A stretch of 63,728 nt of DNA, the filler included, from Klebsormidium nitens (lineage: Eukaryota > Plantae > Klebsormidiophyceae): the NCBI GenBank assembly GCA_000708835.1. It is 7 parts of 7 records of this genome, joined end to end, with 100 filler letters (N's around TTAATTAATTAA, not from the genome) between each part and the next. Parts side by side here need not be neighbours in the genome. Positions count along the whole stretch, not along the records: positions 39,215 to 50,004 come from DF238174.1; 6 more parts are not named here. One strand, 5' to 3'. A program made the position numbers and the translations under genes. The notes below the pieces were generated by a model. It worked only from the letters and a program-made list of their open reading frames with translations, did not search any database and was not told the origin of the DNA. This document shows positions 38,718-50,596 of this stretch, one piece after another (position 1 is the first letter of the stretch; each line of letters begins with the position of its first letter).

Positions 38718-41700
38718 CCTGCCCCTCGAAGAGACAATTGTGATGCTCTTGGGGAAGGGGGCCTTCTGCAAACGATGCCCCTCCACCCCTAGCGGCAATT
38801 GTGCTCTGCTGCAAGACTGGGTGCATAGATTTACCAGAAATTCACGGAGGTTTTTTTTTAATGGAAACGGCGCTTCTTCTTCTACTACATCACCCATCTG
38901 CCATTCTGGACAAGGACCCTGACCAGCCTTCGCTTCTGCAAAGTGGTCCCCTGGGCCCTACCACCACCCTTTTCCAATCAATAGGCCGTCTCCTTCGAGC
39001 TTTCAAAGTACCTGCACCCGTTTAGACTCATGAACAGGACACCTTCTCCAATTCCTTCAGCATGGAGGCTCAGGAGTCAGGGCTATAGCTGTAGTAAACC
39101 CTTGATAGCACAACNNNNNNNNNNNNNNNNNNNNNNNNNNNNNNNNNNNNNNNNNNNNTTAATTAATTAANNNNNNNNNNNNNNNNNNNNNNNNNNNNNN
39201 NNNNNNNNNNNNNNCCGAGTGCGAGGCGCGTGCACTTAAACCAACAAGAGGAGCCTGCTTCAACATTCTTGAGTATGCCATCCTAGTGCTTCATGTATAT
39301 ACAAATAAAGGATCCAGTTGGATAATATCGAATTAACCTCGTAACTTGGAAGTTCGCAGCATTCAGAATGCTGTATTTGTATCGTGTACCATACTTGCGT
39401 CTTCAAGTGTGAACACTATGTAGGCATGTGACACCTATGCAATATTGCATGGCGAGCGAAGAAGAGTGGTTTTGGTGTTGTAAGAAGTGTTGCGAAATGC
39501 GACTTGATGCTGCTCGATTACCCACTATACTCGTTAAGGACGAATATCATTCGACAATCACTCCTTCCAATGCTCCGGTGATTGCAAAGCATTGCACGCT
39601 AGCTTTCAAGCTGAAAATATTTACTTGCTACTCATCGTCGCCCACCGGGGCCCAAACAGCTTCGTAAGCATAGGAATATGGCACTCATTGATTGCATCTC
39701 ATATGTCCGCCCCCTCAACGTTGCAAATTTTAGCGGTTTTGAAGGAAGAACGTACAAATCCTCACGTGGTACACCACCCGATCGAGCGCTTGACTACGAA
39801 ATTCACGTTTGTTATTTGTTCCCCCTAGGAAACGTACATGTACTCTCTAGAATGTCTCGACGGAGAAAGCGCAGTGACTAGAAATGCACGTTTCACGTTA
39901 TGAAGCATAGCTGCTCTTTTGCAGGAGATTTCTTTAGAAGGCACATGAGGGTCCGTCAAAAAGCTAGGACAGTGACACGCTGCCAATCGTTAAATTCGAT
40001 CCATCGATCGGCCGGCCACTTTATTTGAAATTTTGCCATGGGTTGCTCATGAGTCAGAAGTTTAAATGCATTTTGGAATCTTCAACTGTCACACAAAGCT
40101 AACATGCCTCTAAGCTACGGATTCGTCTGTTCACAAGTTTGGCATGGATTGCTTGTGTGTTGGCCTACATACAGATCGAAAGCCGCAGACGTTCGTGCGA
40201 GTTGCCTTAAAGGGCCCGGCCAGGGTTTCCCACAGCCGGGACCTGGCCGGCCGGGAACGAAACCCGGCCGGTGCCGAGGGCACCCCGCCGGCCTCAGCCG
40301 GCTGAAAACTTCAGGCACTCGGCTCGCTTAGCCGGCCGATGATGCTTATTCCGACCGCTCAGCCGGCAGAACCGGGTGCGCGCCGGCAGGTGGCCGGCCG
40401 GGGCAAACCTCCGTGGGAAACCCTGGGCCCCGGCCTAGCGAGAAGGGCCCGGCATTCACCATTACCGCGCTGTGGTGGACCGTTCCCAACCAGCTCCAAG
40501 CAGAGCACTCCCTGGCCCTGTCCCTAGCAGCAAGTAGATTTTTTTTTTTTTTTTTTTTTTTTCAATAATCTGGCCTCAAGCAGTTCGTCAGATGGAAGCT
40601 GCTGACTGGCATACGCGATATCGCAGTTGAACATTACGACTCTAGCGACTCTGAGACAACCGGAGTCCGTGTACTCAATAATCGTGGATTCTGTGGTAAA
40701 TGACCATTTAATTTTGGTAGCGGGCCGGGCGTTTCCGTGTGCGTTGGGGTCTTGTCGCGGTGGTTGCTTCTCCCACTCCCTCCACACTGAGCCGGGAGGG
40801 GGGGAGAAGGTAGCGGGGCTTGCACCCACCCTATGCGGTGGGCGCCCCTGATGGACCGTTTCCGTTTGGTATTGATTGCGGCCGTGCCAAATCGTAGAAC
40901 ATTTCGACTTGGGGATGGAGCGGCAGATTCTCGGGGTGAGATGAGCTTGTGCGTATTTGGTGTTCTGCCGGCAGGCCTAGATTCCGGTTGAAGAATGGTC
41001 TTGGTGACTGAAGATGTTGCTCGTTTTTTCTTTAGTGGAGACAGATTGTCTTGGTTCAACCTTTCCTTTCGCTTATTTCTCATGATCAGTGACTTGCCAT
41101 AAAGTATTGCTGGAGATGTGGTGGTGGACGAATTGTCTGGAACGGTTGTTTGACACGCGGGTGTTTCATATCGGTGGCGTTTTCGTCGGGTTTCTGTGGT
41201 TAGATCAGGCACGGATGAGTGTCGCTTTAGGCCACTGAGATTTGTATTTGTGGATTCGCTGGGCATTGTGCTTTGTGTTTGTGGACGGTCGGGATGTATT
41301 TTGGTTGTNNNNNNNNNNNNNNNNNNNNTTGTACTCAATAATCGTGGATTCTGTGGTAAATGACCATTTAATTTTGGTAGCGGGCCGGGCGTTTCCGTGT
41401 GCGTTGGGGTCTTGTCACGGTGGTTGCTTCTCCCACTCCCTCCACAGCCGGGAGGGGGGGAGAAGGTAGCGGGGCTTGCACCCACCCTATGCGGTGGGCG
41501 CCCCTGATGGACCGTTTCCGTTTGGTATTGATTGCGGCCGTGCCAAATTGTAGAACATTTCGACTTGGGGATGGAGCGGCAGATTCTCGGGGTGAGATGA
41601 GCTTGTGCGTATTTGGTGTTTTGCCGGCAGGCCTAGATTCCGGTTGAATAATGGTCTTGGTGACTGAAGATGTTGCTCGTTTTTTCTTCAGTGGAGACAG

Positions 41701-41860
41701 ATTGTCTTGGTTCAACCTTTTCTTTCGCTTATTTCTCATGATCAGTGACTTGCCATAAAGTATTGCTGGAGATGTGGTGGTGGATGAATTGTCTGGAACG
41801 GTTGTTTGACACGCGGGTGTTTCATATCGGTGGCGTTTTCGTCGGGTTTCTGTGGTTAGA

Positions 41861-44800
41861 TCAGGCACGGATGAGTGTCGCTTTAGGCCACTGAGATTTG
41901 TATTTGTGGATTCGCTGGGCATTGTGCTTTGTGTTTGTGGACGGTCGGAATGTATTTTGGTTGTCGGGTGCAATCGTTGGCGAAGTCTTGTCTTCTCCTT
42001 CCGATGGGATTGTGGCTGGGATAGTCTTGGGAGTATCCGTGGCATCGGGGTTGCTCAGTCCAGCGGCTGCTTCTTGCGACGACATTGGAGGCTTGACTGT
42101 CTTCCTTTGCGTGATGAAAGCCGGTAATACTCGTTTCAATGTGGCGTTTTGGAGAGCCAAACGTCTGTAGCGTTTGCGAAATCGTTCATTTGCACGTTCT
42201 AGGATCGGAGCATCCATGTCATAATCATTGTGTTCGGTTTCAGCTTCGGTACTGTTACACGCTATGTTGTCAACCGGTGTCTCTGTGTGGGTGGTTGTGG
42301 TTGCATGAGTGAGAACAATACGAGGATCATTAGGGCTTGAAGTGCAAGGAGCTATATCAATGGCTTTGCGCTTTGGTTGAGCGGTGGATTTAGTAGGGCA
42401 GAAGGTTCTTGATTTGGCGCTGTCAGATGCCGCCCACCATGATTCGGCAAACTGCATGTAGTCGTCTTCGGTCATTTCATGAAGAGGTTTTTGATTCTGA
42501 AAGAGCTTCATGCGATCTTTAAAGAGCAAGTGTTTTTCCCTCATATCATCACATCTTAGTATCAAGATTTCTTTGAAAGCATGAACAAGACATTTGTGGA
42601 GTTTTTTTGCGATTCGAAGTGCAAGCGTTTCAGAATTGTCAAGCCGTTGTAGGAGCCATTTTTGTGCCGTGACAGAGATCTGTCCGGCTGAGATGTTTCG
42701 TCCGTCATTGAGCTGGGTCTCAAAGAAGCTCTGCCTGATAAAGTTGCTGATTGCGGACTGAGATGCTCGCACGCGATTTGTTTTGCATATTTTTATGCAA
42801 TCANNNNNNNNNNNNNNNNNNNNNNNNNNNNNNNNNNNNNNNNNNNNNNNNNNNNNNNNNNNNNNNNNNNNNNNNNNNNNNNNNNNNNNNNNNNNNNNNN
42901 NNNNNNNNNNNNNNNNNNNNNNNNNNNNNNNNNNNNNNNNNNNNNNNNNNNNNNNNNNNNNNNNNNNNNNNNNNNNNNNNNNNNNNNNNNNNNNNNNNNN
43001 NNNNNNNNNNNNNNNNNNNNNNNNNNNNNNNNNNNNNNNNNNNNNNNNNNNNNNNNNNNNNNNNNNNNNNNNNNNNNNNNNNNNNNNNNNNNNNNNNNNN
43101 NNNNNNNNNNNNNNNNNNNNNNNNNNNNNNNNNNNNNNNNNNNNNNNNNNNNNNNNNNNNNNNNNNNNNNNNNNNNNNNNNNNNNNNNNNNNNNNNNNNN
43201 NNNNNNNNNNNNNNNNNNNNNNNNNNNNNNNNNNNNNNNNNNNNNNNNNNNNNNNNNNNNNNNNNNNNNNNNNNNNNNNNNNNNNNNNNNNNNNNNNNNN
43301 NNNNNNNNNNNNNNNNNNNNNNNNNNNNNNNNNNNNNNNNNNNNNNNNNNNNNNNNNNNNNNNNNNNNNNNNNNNNNNNNNNNNNNNNNNNNNNNNNNNN
43401 NNNNNNNNNNNNNNNNNNNNNNNNNNNNNNNNNNNNNNNNNNNNNNNNNNNNNNNNNNNNNNNNNNNNNNNNNNNNNNNNNNNNNNNNNNNNNNNNNNNN
43501 NNNNNNNNNNNNNNNNNNNCTTCCTGATTACATGCGGTTCAATTTGTCTTTCTGTAAGTTTGTTGATTTGATCTACCAGTGGTTTGCGATCACAATAGAT
43601 AGTGAGGTCGCAGTCTCTTCTAACTAGCATCAAGGTTGCCAAAACTCCAAAGCCTTCTGCGCGTGCAATGGTCTGGTGTCCTGGTATTCTTGTGCTAATC
43701 TTTTTGTAGGCGTCATCTGCATCCAGTTCGGGGAAGTAGATTCCAAATCCTGCTCTTGTGTTTCCTTTGTTGGCACTGCCGTCCGGGTATGCTACGGAAG
43801 CAGTTATGGTGTGTTTGGGATATATGCCCCACATGTCATGTGCTTCTTCGTTATGGGAGGGCATTACATTAGCATGGGGGTAAAGAAGATTTTCAATGTA
43901 GATTTGTACTAGTACTTTCAGTAGCCTCATTTGGACAACGCTGACTGATGGGATGTTCAGGTCATGGTGTAGAGGTCTCGTAAATGGGCTAATCAGTTTT
44001 CTTTTGATCAAATCTAGCGCCGACGCCGTAGTGCGCCCCATCTGATTTTGCCAGGGCTCTTGCGGTTGACAGTATTGCAGGTTGTCCGCAATGCTTATTT
44101 CAAACAGTGGTGATATGTCATCTAGGGTAGTAAGTTTGGCTTTTGCCAGATTGTTGAACAGGCGGACTATGTGTGTACCGGTGAAGTTTTGGGAGTTGCT
44201 TAGTTCCAGGTGATACTTGTGGGCTATGGGTGCAAGTGTTTCACAAATCTTTCGGCTGTGAAGATTGATGCAGGTGTCAAATTGGATTGATAGGGACATG
44301 TTAACTTTTTGGAGATGTTCACGCACCCCGCGAAATAGTGGAGAGTATTTCGATTCGGGCCATGCCATTCGGCGACCGATGGAGGAAAAGGGTGGCATAC
44401 CCTCAAGCGCTTTATGTCTGATGTGGGAGTAGCTTATGCGTGAAGTTACTTGGCATGGTTGGTCCACGCTGAGAAGTGCGGATTGCATGAATTCTGCTCG
44501 GGTGCTCGCTTGTAGTGTTGGGATGTGGTAAAGTCCCTGGTGGACCAGAAGGTCAGTGGGAGTGGATTGTGCAATGCCTGCTAGGCACTTGACCGTCTTT
44601 GCAAGGATACTTTGGAAGTCGTCTAGGTCTGTCTTGTTGAACTTTACAAGGTACATCCGGTATCGCAGCTTGCTAGCGAGATCCGAGTTGACGTAGTTGA
44701 TGGCTTCATGTAGTGACATGCGTTCTTTTTGCCGACTAATATATTCGGCGCATGAATTTCGGAGTTTGGCTATCATTTCCTTGCGCTGTTGTTTGAAGTC

Positions 44801-47784
44801 AAGGCCCATGTTGATATAGTATCCCAGGTATTTGTATGATGTTTTTCCGTGGAGTCTCGGGACCACGCCCCAGCGACATTCTGGGACCGGTGGAGGGAGA
44901 CCTCCATCGTGATCCATATACTGATAGCCGCATTTGTCCGCATTCAATTCCATGCCATAGTAGGCAAGGAAGCGTTCAAGCATGTCGAACATCTCAGTGA
45001 CCTCCTTGTTGGAATTGGCTATGAGTGCCATGTCGTCGGCATAGCCGTTTACGGGTACTTTTATCTTGTGATCAAGTGGAGATTCCGGCGGGCTTTCCAT
45101 TTCATATCCTAAATCGTGTGAGCGGAGCCATTTGAAGAACATGTTTAGGACTAGGCAGAAGAGGGTAGGGCTGAGACAATCTCCTTCATGAACCCCATTT
45201 TGTTTGGCTTGCGGGCTGGAGATACCGGTGGGGCCACGGGCCGTGCACGTGAATTCATGTTGGGTATCCTTGATCAATGCGAGGAAGGGACCGTCAAGAC
45301 CAAGAGCAGTAAGTGCATCTGTGAATGCTTGATATAGGACGCTAGGGAAAGCACCTTTTATGTCTGAGTATACGATGTGGAGGGGTTTTTTGTTCAACTT
45401 GGCGTCCGCAATAATGTTCATGACTACTGCCGCTTTGTGTGCAGAATGGATACCTCTGCGGTTTGCTCCTTGGTTGGGGTCCAAGCCCGTAGTTTGCGTG
45501 AGCAATCGCTGGAGTCTGCTGTTAATTGAGCCTGTTACAACTTTGAATAGGCAACTAAGTAGACTGATCCCACGATAGTTTTTGAATTGGAGGGGGTCAC
45601 CCGACTTGTAGATGAAGATGAGAAATGCTTGTTTCATGGAAGCCGGCATCTGTTGTTGTTTTAGGATCGTGTTCAGGAACCTGAGCAGTATACCTTCTAT
45701 GTCAAAGTCTTTGAGATCTTCATTGAGGCACATGTACTTGAGGACATCGTATTGTATTCGATCTATCCCCGGAGAGGATCGACCCGTGCTTCGAAGGAAC
45801 TCTCTAAGATCCTCTCTTGTAATGGGGGCCATCAATTGGATATCTGTACTTCTGATCTTTTTACATTCCTCCTTCCATATCGAGGCGTCAAGCCAAGGAG
45901 GGATGGACCCTTCTGTGGATTTTGTTGGCATAGTATTTGGGCGGGTGGCTGCAGCTGTAGTGCCCCAGTATTCATTCACTGCGTGGCCGGTTATCATTTT
46001 TTGTGGTTGCTCTGGATCTTTCATCATGGCCGGTAGAGGAGAGCTGGCGTTCTTATGCATTAGATGATACGCACGTCGAGCTTTGGAGCCTATGCCTGTG
46101 GAAAAGGTTTCTTTCAGAATTTTCTCTTTTCCCGATTTCTTGGCGGATCTCAACTTCACATCATACTCTTTTTTCCATTTAAAGTGAAGTTGGCATGCGA
46201 CCGTCCAGTGTTGGATCCAGTCCCCCTCCGACCATCGAGACCCAGAAGTATCTCTTGGAAGCAAGGATGTTAATTCTGGGAGTGCTCCTCGCAAGCGGGG
46301 TTCGTTCTGGAAGTCCAAGTATGTGCTTCTTGCTTGTAGCCGTTCTGGTTTGTCCAGGCTGCGTCGACCGCGCACTCTTGCATCATATAAGTTTGTGAGG
46401 CTGGTTTTGTAGCGATGTAGCCATACCATGACATGATTGGCAAACCCCGTTTCAACTGTCTTGTATGTTTTGCGTCGTTGGTTGCTTCCTGAGTTCAGGG
46501 CTTCGCCGACTTTGTTCACAAAAAGATCAATCAAGTGCGTATGGATTTCTGCAAGGCGTTCCGATGGGAGAGGTTTCGTTGCGGTCTGGTTATATTCCGG
46601 ATCGTGTAATAGATGACGTGCTATTTCTGGAGGAAGGCATGAACGCCAGTTTTGCACATTCCGTTTGAGGATCTGCAGATGTTCCTTAGAGATCTTATCT
46701 AGTTTGATCAGTGGATTTAGCTTGAACAGCACATCCGGATATTCTACCCACCCGTCGCACAGCGAGCTTAGGCTGATTGGATGTATGACCGCTCGATGGT
46801 CAGAAAGTTTTATAGTGTCATACTGATCCCAGTCAATGATAATTGTATCCTCAAGATGGTCAGTGGGAAAGGATGTGAACATCTTGTCCAAGATGGACCT
46901 GAAGCGTTGGGAGCGCGGCTTGATGCAAAGGTGTATGCTGTTTGAGCATTGAGTTTTTGTTGTGCCATAGGGTCGAATAGGAATAGATTATCTTCTGCCA
47001 AATCTGCTATCAGACCGGTCAAGAATCGCGTGTCAGACTTTCTGGTAGTCTTTTGTGCAGGCTGTGGGCCATTCGCTAGTAGGGGTCGATAGATGTCACG
47101 CTCAGCATTCGTATAGCTGTTCCAGTCGCCAGCAAGGATCAAATGACTATTTGGACGGTCAATTAGTGATTTCATTGTATTAGCTACATGCACTGTTAAT
47201 GATTCCCAAAAGGCCGGCTTTTGCTCTTCTTTGGCTGGAGCATATACACCGATGATTTCAAGAGTAATGCTATTGTCATCTTTGGTCGGGATGATAAGTG
47301 ACCCTTGGATCACTCTCGCAGCAAATGATTGGACATTCAGTTTCACGGGTTGGTATGCAAGTCCTACACGTATAGCGATGCATACGCCCCACTCCTTTGC
47401 CGACTCCGCGATGGCATGCGAGCTATTTGAAATATCAATATAAGATACAAAGTGGAAGGTGTATCCATCAACTGTATAGGTTTTACCAACCTTATTTTTC
47501 CCAATGGATCGGCGAGTTTCAGTGAGTATTGCAACATGTACATCGTGTTTCTTGAGAAAGGCTGGAAGATCTGCCAACTTATTATCAATGCCCCGACAAT
47601 TCCAATTCATGACATTCAATTTATCGTGCATTTGTATATTAGGCTGCTCATTTACATTATGGCAGACATCATCTTCATTACTGCGGCATGCACCAGACGG
47701 TACGACTGGTCCTGGGTTGGGATGAATATCTCCACATAGTAGAAGGAGATCGGAGATGTTGTGAGCCCCTACCTTGTATTTCAT
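41861..47784 (-). pseudogene. LINE ORF2 (APE-RT-RNase H) interrupted by a 1-nt frameshift near 46920
   Basis: The APE frame reads to YTFAS. The C-terminal APE motifs (RSILDKMF...SDHRAV) and RT continue in the -1 frame. Frame continuity across the 716-N gap is unverified. Confidence 0.8.
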
Positions 47785-48092
47785 TATTGACGGGTTTGGT
47801 CTATAAAAGGTGCAGCCGTAGTCACAGGGCACTCTACAAAATCTTATATGGTGTGTAACAAATATATCATGTGGATATGGCATGTATCCGAGCAGACATG
47901 CCGGGACAGCAAGAAACTGCTCATTGGACAAGCAACCTACGTGAAGCTGCATTGAAGTCGAGACGGACCAATTTAGCAACGAGTGGTTGTAATCGGGGAG
48001 AAGAAGGAGATCAACGAGCACTGGGTCTTGCATCATCCAAACAGAGCCTAAAATACTACGGCCAGCCCTAGGTAAGTCATTCTCCGACAGAC

Positions 48093-49733
48093 CTACTCTA
48101 TTGCTAGTTGTACTGCATCCTGCCCACCACAACCGGTACAACAGCGTAACCATTGATTGCTTCTTTGAAGAATAAAGATACCAGGCTGCCATGCCACACG
48201 CGACAGGCTATAACTCAGTTGTTGAAGGTCAGGCGCTTCGGTTTCTTTTCCTCCGGTTCTTCCTGCATGTGTGAGTCGGACGTAAAAACAGTGGATGCAA
48301 AAAACTGAGTAGGGGCAAACAGCAGGGTAGGAGGTACAGGAGAACCTTTGTAGGCAGTCTTTTCGGTTCTCTCTTTGAAGCAGAATGGAAATTGTGATTC
48401 TCCTGCACCTCCTTTGCTTCGCAAATTGGCATGCCTGTTGCATGGTACGGGCAGCACAAGTGACTTTTGCTGCAGCAACTTTGCAGATTCGACAGAAGAA
48501 CGCCATTCTTACCACGATGTACTCTGGCAGGCCGCGGGACGTGCGCTTGAAGTGGTTCCTGGCCTGCATGATTGCGGCCAGGAGACGTCCGTTGTCCCTG
48601 ACCAGCACGTCAAAAGCAGACCGCTGGTCGAGGCTGGGGATCTGGGTCTTCAACACGTCGCTCTTCCAGAAGTAGGCCAGGTCTGCAACCAGCTTCTTCC
48701 CAGAGGGCAGATTAGCTGCACCAAGCCAGATTCGCGCGGCAACCGTCTCATCGTAGGTCTCAACGAGAAAGGCGCGCCCATTGGGCCCATTGAACTCCTC
48801 CACACTCACGTCGTCCTTGTCCGCTCCAGAAGCGGCGACTGCACCCAGAATGTCGCTTGCCCGGATGTGGTTGGGAAGGTTAATCCCGTCCACGACAAGC
48901 GCCATGGGGTCGTAGGTGGTGGGGCCCAGCTCCCCGCGCTTGGGGTGCAGAACCCACTTTTTGCCCCCGGGGAGAGTCTGCGAGGTTGAGAAGAGTAAAA
49001 GCGTGAGAGTTTTGGATCCTCTGTAAAGATTGCGATGAGCTAACTCGAGTGTAGGGACCTCTGCATTTGCATATCGTTGCCGCTTCTGAAACTTGTTCGG
49101 GACGTTCAAAAACACTTGCCAATTGTGCGGAAGACGTGCACTTGTGCTCACTAATTTGCGAAAAGCTTGAGCTCGAGCCTGTTTGTTCAGGGTCGACAAT
49201 TGCGGACCCCAGTAGCTTACCACGCTCACGCGCCCCTGAATGATCTTGAAGAAGGTGTTGTCATCCGTGACTGAAATTTGCAGCTTCTGTCCGCCCTTCT
49301 TGTCCGCCAGTAGCTCCACCCTGGCGCCTTCATCCCCACAGCACTTTATGACGCCCTCCTGCAGGGTGGCCACATGCTCGGGCGACAGAGGAACCCCGTT
49401 AGTGCCGTACACGCCCTGGGTGCTCCTCTTCGACCAGGCCTTCTCCTCATACCTGTGCTGGGGGGGGGCGATGTTGAGGCCGGCTTCGCGGATGATGTTG
49501 CTGCCATTAACGTTGTCCTGCATGGTGGAGACATTCAGGGCGCACTCAGATCTGGGATTTCTGTGGCAACAAAGTGGAGTAAGCAGCGTTAGGTACTCTG
49601 ATCCTTTCTTCATCCCTTTGGTGTCTAGAACACTTGCTATATCACGTCGAAAGAGGCATGGTTCCATCCTAATTCTTTTGTTGAATTCCGTCAACAATCT
49701 GAAGTTTGCGTTAGGGTTTGCACCAGCACTCAT
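48093..49733 (-). CDS. 546-codon ORF upstream of ORF2: LINE ORF1-like or a host gene, with two repeated RRM-like units
   Basis: Continuous ORF in the ORF1 position and orientation. GC-rich blocks 49530-49230 and 48977-48513 are bounded by phase-0 splice signals. Confidence 0.55.
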   Translation of the reverse strand: MSAGANPNANFRLLTEFNKRIRMEPCLFRRDIASVLDTKGMKKGSEYLTLLTPLCCHRNPRSECALNVSTMQDNVNGSNIIREAGLNIAPPQHRYEEKAWSKRSTQGVYGTNGVPLSPEHVATLQEGVIKCCGDEGARVELLADKKGGQKLQISVTDDNTFFKIIQGRVSVVSYWGPQLSTLNKQARAQAFRKLVSTSARLPHNWQVFLNVPNKFQKRQRYANAEVPTLELAHRNLYRGSKTLTLLLFSTSQTLPGGKKWVLHPKRGELGPTTYDPMALVVDGINLPNHIRASDILGAVAASGADKDDVSVEEFNGPNGRAFLVETYDETVAARIWLGAANLPSGKKLVADLAYFWKSDVLKTQIPSLDQRSAFDVLVRDNGRLLAAIMQARNHFKRTSRGLPEYIVVRMAFFCRICKVAAAKVTCAARTMQQACQFAKQRRCRRITISILLQRENRKDCLQRFSCTSYPAVCPYSVFCIHCFYVRLTHAGRTGGKETEAPDLQQLSYSLSRVAWQPGIFILQRSNQWLRCCTGCGGQDAVQLAIE

Positions 49734-50596
49734 GTTGGATGGGGCCTGCTTTGCTAGGCTGCCTTGGCAAGGACAATCAGCTTTGGCACTACTTTCTACA
49801 GTGGGTCTTCCTCTACCAGGTGCGGATTCCTCAATGCAGGACTTAAGTTGAACACAGCGGCATTTCTAGTTCAATACACGAGGACCATTTCAGGGTTATT
49901 TTACCTTTCCGAATTTTCACTTTCCGAATGGGAAATCCGAATTTCTGACTTTCCGAACGCAGATAATTGTTTATTTATTCGGAATCATCACGTTGGACTA
50001 CGGTNNNNNNNNNNNNNNNNNNNNNNNNNNNNNNNNNNNNNNNNNNNNTTAATTAATTAANNNNNNNNNNNNNNNNNNNNNNNNNNNNNNNNNNNNNNNN
50101 NNNNGATGGAGACGCGCCCTTGCCCGCATCAAGTTGCGGCCGCGCCGCGTACACAGTTTTAGAAAGAAGGCGAAGTTGGCCATTTTTGAAGTTGTGGAGG
50201 AGTTCAAGGACTTCGAAAAGGGCAAGGAGAGCTCAGAGAGCAAGCCCGCCGGTGTGAAACAAGAGGGAGAAGCCTATGGAGTCCCAAGACTTGGATAGAC
50301 ATCCAACGCGAGAGTGCCACGGGAGCCCGCCAAGTGGTATCGGGCAGTTGTGGGAGCAGCAACGAAAGTCGTGGGGGCCGAAGAGCCGAAGCACGGAGTG
50401 GAGAGACATCGCCCGAGAAGAGCGACGCAGTGCGCTACTCGAAGAGCGAGGGTGGCGAAAACAGAGGCGTTTAGATGACGCCAAAGGCGAAGATAACAAA
50501 TTGCAAGAGAAAGCGCGCCGAATAAGAGGCTTTGTGTAATTGGTTTGAGTGGGAGTGTCGACACACCCACCCAATCCACTCTCACCTACTCACCGA

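Follow-up and report, generated by a model that had tools for sequence, protein, structure and literature searches.

What does a short peptide, placed immediately before the endonuclease of a retrotransposon, do in the genome of Klebsormidium nitens (Klebsormidiophyceae)? The window, by which we mean the whole stretch of DNA analysed, has 63,728 nucleotides (filler included) and joins seven parts of assembly GCA_000708835.1; the piece discussed here derives from DF238174.1 (positions 39,215 to 50,004). On its minus strand lies a nearly full-length retrotransposon of the type lacking long terminal repeats (non-LTR), with a first open reading frame (ORF1), an APE endonuclease, a reverse transcriptase (RT), RNase H and a poly(A) tail, and the piece stops before the 5' end of the element is reached. 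A sequence-only reading had proposed that a peptide resembling the 2A (StopGo) class, at which ribosomes skip one peptide bond, stands directly upstream of the APE domain. The analysis presented here indicates that this motif is probably a genuine and selectively maintained 2A element of a family of APE-type long interspersed nuclear elements (LINEs), most likely splitting the two proteins of the element in the course of translation.

The peptide and its conservation

Translation of the minus strand across 47560-48192 returned the peptide exactly as first read, namely a Met (47784-47782), a Leu-rich stretch and the core C-G-D-I-H-P-N-P-G/P, in which the slash marks the bond predicted to be skipped, between Gly 47712-47710 and Pro 47709-47707 (the Asn of the core lies at 47718-47716). 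The peptide is in frame with an ORF of 460 residues (46810-48192), in which the Exo_endo_phos (APE) match of Pfam covers residues 195-359, corresponding to 47116-47610, and about 30 residues separate G/P from the first conserved APE block (LNVMNWNCRG). Compared with 2A peptides of class A, it has the C-terminal N-P-G/P (47718-47707), the G-D-(V/I) that directly precedes E-x-NPGP, in the form G-D-I, which is invariant in relatives save for rare decayed copies, and the hydrophobic Leu-rich tract, represented by LLLL at positions -13 to -10 from the skipped bond; all relatives are also Leu-rich. The departure from class A lies at position -5 from the bond, where His occupies the place of Glu (E14 of P2A). 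The window peptide holds all the residues that were intolerant to substitution in the deep mutational scan of P2A and F2A (L6, L7, G11, D12, N16, P17, G18 and P19; bioRxiv 10.64898/2026.09.24.754024). The hallmarks of class B, an invariant Trp around -16 and a centre of EEGIE type, are absent, as none of the 19 residues preceding G/P is a Trp and GDIH stands at the centre; the one feature that the window peptide shares with the class B peptide of Rao et al. 2025 is the Pro in front of Asn (PMC12338488).

Could such a motif be a coincidence, an NPGP that happens to follow a leucine-rich stretch? For NPGP by itself the expectation is about 0.14-0.2 per piece, and a second, unrelated one is present on the opposite strand at 40419. 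The complete pattern GD[VI]xxNPGP, which occurs once in the six frames of the piece, has an expectation of only about 3e-5 and was not found in 300 shuffles; the expectation of the shorter D[VI]xxNPGP is about 5e-4. Chance is then refuted by conservation, the position of the motif being maintained in all relatives, and we assign to it a negligible probability.

These relatives were gathered by a word-indexed search and by HMMER, with which 1.84 billion representatives were scanned in full using a profile of 2A plus APE. Two JGI metagenomes, a single ENA assembly and Logan runs supplied almost all of them; a separate related-locus search in metagenome contigs confirmed no relatives. The family is small, with 321 hits at E<=1e-3 and 47 at E<=1e-10 in the HMMER scan. 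Every family protein that covers the homologous site carries the motif there (23/23), intact in 17 cases and altered by one to three residues in the other six, among which the decayed forms NPGQ, NPDP, NAGP, HPGP and PPHPEP were found, as would be expected of dead copies. The motif retains its position even in relatives with only 40-50% identity in APE, in which the surrounding N-terminal region is otherwise unalignable. Moreover, all nine codons of GDIHPNPGP vary synonymously across seven loci, with just one nonsynonymous change; this turnover argues for selection acting on the peptide rather than on the RNA, and supports the conclusion that the motif has been kept under peptide-level selection across the family.

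Histidine-proline in the place of glutamate

The replacement of Glu by His creates a puzzle, which the relatives help to clarify: Is it a sign of decay or an alternative form of the same device? At the homologous site the family has either the canonical GDVE[LVAC]NPGP or GD[IV]HPNPGP. In the metagenomic hits P0038-P0177, 25 of the 27 distinct peptides with His in the Glu position have Pro as the next residue, versus 3 of 43 with Glu (Fisher 1.6e-13, a value uncorrected for relatedness and obtained with a query profile that favoured His-Pro). On the strength of this tight pairing, the His-Pro form is probably a constrained, functional variant rather than a product of decay. In diverse metagenomic 2A-like peptides, Glu precedes many different residues, unlike His. 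The two forms have also been found together, for a contig of Logan run SRR23617307 (L005:1730-1920) has tandem 2As within one open frame, the canonical GDIERNPGP followed, 43 residues apart, by GDIHPNPGP. The first of these aligns with the single, canonical motif of another relative, L007, and the second is the extra one.

The literature is mixed regarding the earlier caution that the change from Glu to His might lower activity. In favour of that caution, the 2A of Crack-15_BF, the one LINE 2A with this change to have been assayed, showed very low activity in reticulocyte lysate, and Odon et al. saw little or no activity when Glu was replaced non-conservatively (PMC3708506). Conversely, E14H was the only substitution at D12, E14 or N16 that kept P2A active, with a score of 0.85, a tolerance which applies to P2A and not to F2A (bioRxiv 10.64898/2026.09.24.754024), and yadokariviruses conserve GDVHPNPGP as a 2A-like motif (PMC10817634).

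The low activities of Odon et al. would fit an explanation in which the His variant is the inactive relic of an ancestral working 2A, serving now as a hydrophobic N-terminal leader that is possibly signal-like, as in the 2A-like signal sequences with dual targeting of sea urchins; 2A-like peptides at an N-terminus have been described in such a dual role (PMC4981915), and the window copy is itself defective. We consider this explanation quite improbable. A relic would drift in the way that the copies with NPGQ, NPDP and NAGP have done, whereas GD[IV]HPNPGP has stayed unchanged over the lineages with strongly divergent APE domains, with synonymous turnover at each codon and a tight His-Pro pairing, and the same core is conserved in the yadokarivirus motif.

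A probable single reading frame from ORF1 into ORF2

If the peptide is a functional 2A, what would it separate? The sequence-only reading had suggested that it might free the ORF2 protein (ORF2p) from a longer N-terminal extension or fusion, and three relatives with an ORF1-like protein in frame fit this suggestion. In L009, the closest relative with an RT 73% identical to that of the window element, the homolog of ORF1 is in the same frame as 2A and APE, 48 codons lying between them, with one in-frame UGA. In L005, 610 codons are open upstream of the second 2A, and this region aligns with L007 in a single frame that runs through the only UGA of L007, the 2A and into APE (476 columns, E = 2e-47). 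Hence, by their sequences, three diverged subfamilies share a single-frame layout of ORF1-like protein, 2A, APE and RT, in which a StopGo site would be needed, and the basic design of the family is probably one ORF1-2A-ORF2 polyprotein.

The continuous frame of L007 and that of L009 have exactly one stop each, in both cases UGA (L007:9920-9922, UGA-C; L009:3522-3524, UGA-A), and that of L009 aligns to an AGA codon for Arg in ORF1 of the window; the single UGA may be a nonsense mutation or a readthrough gate. The ORF of 1126 residues upstream of the 2A-APE ORF in L007 (L007:6542-9922) is absent from the metagenome gene calls, in which short minus-strand genes take its place.

ORF1 belongs to the element, and its protein is about 51% identical to the upstream ORFs of L003/L004 and L009. 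It matches no Pfam family and no PDB sequence, and its AlphaFold model is poor overall (mean pLDDT 42), with a sole confident segment whose structural matches are mostly RRM domains, with weak Z scores up to 5.2. The model is thus suggestive of an RNA-binding protein of ORF1p type. The possibility that this ORF1 is common to all relatives was rejected, the upstream ORFs of L001, L005 and L007 being unrelated or marginally similar.

With this design, the mechanism could be as follows. During translation of ...LLLLCGDIHPNPG, the Leu-rich helix of the nascent chain would lie in the exit tunnel together with the D/H/N core and block formation of the peptide bond to the next Pro. The upstream chain would be released with a Gly end and translation would then resume at the Pro, which would become the first residue of ORF2p, some 30 residues ahead of the endonuclease. 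The upstream chain in the basic design of the family would be the ORF1 protein, maybe RRM-like, and one long ORF would yield separate ORF1p and ORF2p; the N-terminus of ORF2p would be identical for any choice of start codon or upstream fusion. The translational recoding that had been proposed is well supported, though not demonstrated, by comparative evidence: What we observe is a motif, where it lies, that it is conserved, and that relatives have an in-frame architecture, and we infer the skipping itself and its efficiency with His instead of Glu.

Several facts weigh against this interpretation, besides the very low activity of Crack-15_BF. ORF1 and ORF2 are out of frame in the window and in L001, L003, L006 and L008, which means that not every member has the single-polyprotein design, or that it has often been lost. 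The window copy contains a frameshift and gaps of N. Furthermore, in a screen reported in 2026 most of the tested retrotransposon 2A-like peptides lowered protein abundance instead of giving clean skipping (bioRxiv 10.64898/2026.06.17.732966).

The latter result underlies the rival that deserves most attention, though we judge it unlikely: The peptide would be mainly a translational brake, a Leu-rich stall helix of the 'reduction class' that holds ORF2p at low levels and rarely skips productively, an explanation that overlaps with the one we prefer. The four Leu at -13 to -10 match the pattern of three to six Leu tied to reduced protein abundance, and 59% of the ORF2p 2A-like peptides tested in that screen belonged to reduction classes; relatives have an OTU deubiquitinase at the C-terminus, and the same preprint speculates that enzymes of this type counter the degradation triggered by stalling (bioRxiv 10.64898/2026.06.17.732966). 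The feeble skipping of Crack-15_BF points in the same direction (PMC3708506). Yet the in-frame arrangement of ORF1, 2A and ORF2 in L005, L007 and L009 is sensible only if the parts separate, and the strict conservation of the final G-P, together with the canonical DVExNPGP in sister lineages, argues for skipping, as does the activity of E14H in P2A (bioRxiv 10.64898/2026.09.24.754024).

How, then, should the offset between the two frames in the window be read? The ORF2 frame of the window is open from 48207, with its first ATG at 48192, and overlaps ORF1 by about 100-115 nt, in agreement with the earlier description of a frame open to 48192 and overlapping the end of ORF1 by about 100 nt. Programmed -1 ribosomal frameshifting within this overlap could join ORF1 and ORF2 into a fusion that the 2A would then cut. 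It is true that ORF2 is in the -1 frame with respect to ORF1, that both frames are open over 48093-48207 and that in L006 the frames are likewise related by -1, over a longer overlap. However, no slippery heptamer of the form X XXY YYZ occurs in the overlap in any frame, and the relation between the frames is not conserved, being 0, +1 or -1 among relatives, with longer linkers in the +1 and -1 cases. The linker from the end of ORF1 homology to the start of 2A homology is also about 278 nt longer in the window than in L009, a difference which explains the offset. We therefore read the offset as an indel, and hold programmed frameshifting to be very improbable. Taken with the 1-nt indel at the end of APE, the extra 278 nt or so make the window copy probably inactive or partly mis-assembled.

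The linker of the window is open throughout in the ORF2 frame and includes a short VLVDLLLL stretch resembling the 2A leader of L009, while showing no significant similarity to any fetched locus. An origin by internal duplication of the 2A region was considered and discarded, blastn and tblastx giving no significant repeat and no locus match. Upstream of G/P, the ORF2 frame of the window has in-frame Met codons at -161, -148, -109, -108, -81 and -58. The window, L006 and L007 have in addition a Met 25-29 codons before G/P, at which translation could begin internally, so that a short leader would be released; if the window copy is expressed, ORF2 would start at an in-frame AUG, the nearest lying 25 codons before G/P.

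The window copy, its relatives and known systems

The features of the window copy are collected in table 1.

Table 1. Features of the retrotransposon and its surroundings, in window coordinates
Feature	Coordinates	Strand	Description
ORF1	48093..49733	-	546 aa; stop at 48093-48095
ORF1 residues ~276-356, sole confident segment	48666..48908	-	pLDDT 73-85; beta-alpha-beta-beta-alpha-beta, ferredoxin-like
Linker, end of ORF1 homology to start of 2A homology	47802..48125	-	Exceeds the L009 linker by ~278 nt (2 mod 3)
ORF2 frame open upstream of 2A	47785..48207	-	141 codons; -1 frame relative to ORF1; overlaps ORF1 end
2A/StopGo-like peptide	47707..47784	-	Met, Leu-rich stretch (LLLL at -13..-10), GDIHPNPG/P; from translation
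ORF2p after the predicted skip site	46918..47706	-	~30-aa linker, then APE endonuclease
1-nt frameshift at C-terminal end of APE	46903..46915	-	Precedes conserved RSILDK...SDHR block
Rest of ORF2	43520..46891	-	RVT_1 44813-45586; RNase H 43547-43795, cut by N gap
Assembly gap inside ORF2	42804..43519	.	716 N; N run
ORF2 C-terminal region	41861..42802	-	Homologous only to pre-OTU part of relatives' C-terminal ORF
3' region, 639-bp direct duplication	40670..41964	-	Copies 40670-41308 and 41330-41964, 98% identical, either side of 20-N gap
Poly(A) tail, 3' end of element	40539..40562	-	24 nt; from sequence

The defining succession of LINEs, APE followed by RT in ORF2 (Exo_endo_phos and RVT_1), is contiguous in relatives and split in the window by the frameshift, at a point where relatives such as L005 are continuous. 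RNase H (PF00075, residues 1033-1115 of the RT ORF) lies downstream of RT, as in the LINE clades bearing this domain (the I group including Ingi, the L1 of plants, Proto1 and Dualen/RandI), and it is present also in L003 and L008; both RVT_1 and RNase H are confirmed. The long RT/RNase H ORF spans 46891-41861 and is broken by the assembly gap. The direct duplication takes in the end of ORF2 and the 3' untranslated region, and looks like redundant contig ends that were scaffolded together; it is possibly an assembly artefact. Tandem Repeats Finder reported no tandem repeat on the piece, the period of the duplication exceeding 500. The flank past the poly(A) (40200-40535) is unusually GC-rich (about 59%), with many repeats of GGCCGG type. 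The observed/expected ratio of CpG is 0.8-0.97; neither this ratio, nor a search for dinoflagellate spliced leaders, nor Rfam pointed to a particular host.

The layout of the family is ORF1, 2A, APE, RT and RNase H, to which relatives add zf-RVT and OTU. In these relatives ORF2 continues after RNase H through a weak match to zf-RVT into an OTU cysteine protease domain, which in L008 covers residues 1667-1778 (E = 4.6e-7) and is found also in L003, L005 and L001; the window copy has only the part that precedes it. The OTU-like regions lie at L008:7165-7500, L003:14315-14665 and L005:7307-7693. After RNase H in L008, L003 and L005, Pfam gives only zf-RVT and OTU, with no match to a model of restriction-like endonuclease, a domain that Dualen/RandI elements have besides APE and that Pfam covers poorly. 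Directly downstream of the OTU ORF in L003 there is an ORF of 535 residues (L003:16035-17642) with weak PPR/TPR matches, either a part of the element or a host gene.

The co-occurrence of the His-Pro form and OTU lends itself to a more ambitious hypothesis, which we regard as rather unlikely. GD[IV]HPNPGP would constitute a distinct subclass of StopGo peptides, in which His needs the next Pro, acting together with the C-terminal OTU: The stall would split ORF1p from ORF2p and set their ratio, OTU would shield the stalled or released products from ubiquitination by ribosome quality control, and the in-frame UGA of two relatives could add a readthrough gate.

The presence of 2A peptides at the N-terminus of ORF2 is established in L1Tc/Ingi and in Rex1, L2, CR1 and Crack LINEs (PMC3708506), and predictions of 2A peptides extend to Archaeplastida, TSAR and Haptista (PMC12338488); a preprint of 2026 counts several hundred reverse-transcribing contigs that bear a 2A, the majority of them non-LTR-like (bioRxiv 10.64898/2026.09.24.754024). 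The combination of 2A and RNase H, which had seemed unrecognised in the sequence-only reading, is not new, L1Tc/Ingi being the founding 2A-bearing LINEs (PMC3708506) and RNase H being listed for the Ingi clade (PMC4640811). Indeed, LINEs with 2A and RNase H, Glu-to-His variants, algal ORF2p 2As and fusions of ORF1, 2A and ORF2 have all been published already. The window case is a further example of a device described in LINEs, with no new mechanism or host range beyond the papers of 2013-2026. Some value attaches to side observations, namely the covariation of His and Pro, the tandem 2As and the family architecture that combines 2A and OTU.

Similar in organisation are the elements of trypanosomes (L1Tc/Ingi) and Ingi-1_AC of Aplysia, the 2A of which is more than 97% active in vitro (PMC3708506). 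They too have 2A directly upstream of APE in a LINE with RT and RNase H, but carry the canonical Glu instead of His-Pro, while relatives in the window family add zf-RVT, OTU and a separate or fused ORF1. The animal 2As of Rex1, L2, CR1 and Crack (Odon et al. 2013, PMC3708506) share the site near the N-terminus of ORF2, the Leu-rich tract upstream and the association with an organisation in a single ORF. Crack-15_BF has the same change from Glu to His but is almost inactive, in contrast with the His-Pro form of the window family, which has been strictly kept between deeply diverged members and occurs in alternation with the canonical one. The GDVHPNPGP of yadokariviruses (PMC10817634) has the identical His-Pro core octapeptide and is likewise conserved in its lineage, although it belongs to the polyprotein of an RNA virus rather than a retrotransposon, with no evidence of common descent with the window family.

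A further precedent is found in the ORF2p 2A-like peptides described 'from algae to fish', among which the ORF2p of Haematococcus lacustris and Symbiodinium are fused to deubiquitinases and Cordylochernes has an ORF1p-2A-ORF2p fusion; many retrotransposon 2As were proposed in that work to mainly lower protein abundance (bioRxiv 10.64898/2026.06.17.732966). These elements share with the window family the 2A before APE, the co-occurrence with OTU or other deubiquitinases and the position of 2A between the ORF1p and ORF2p parts. The difference, compared by description only, is that their deubiquitinase or PPR is N-terminal, versus the C-terminal OTU after RNase H and zf-RVT in the relatives of the window element. 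Against this background, the family presented here is a well-documented natural case in which canonical and His-Pro cores interchange at one homologous site, once in tandem, and the sequence rules of StopGo can usefully be compared across its members. The family carries a warning for annotation too, since the ORF2 starts of such elements are not where gene callers place them, and it supports the view that LINEs use 2A to obtain ORF1p and ORF2p from one reading frame.

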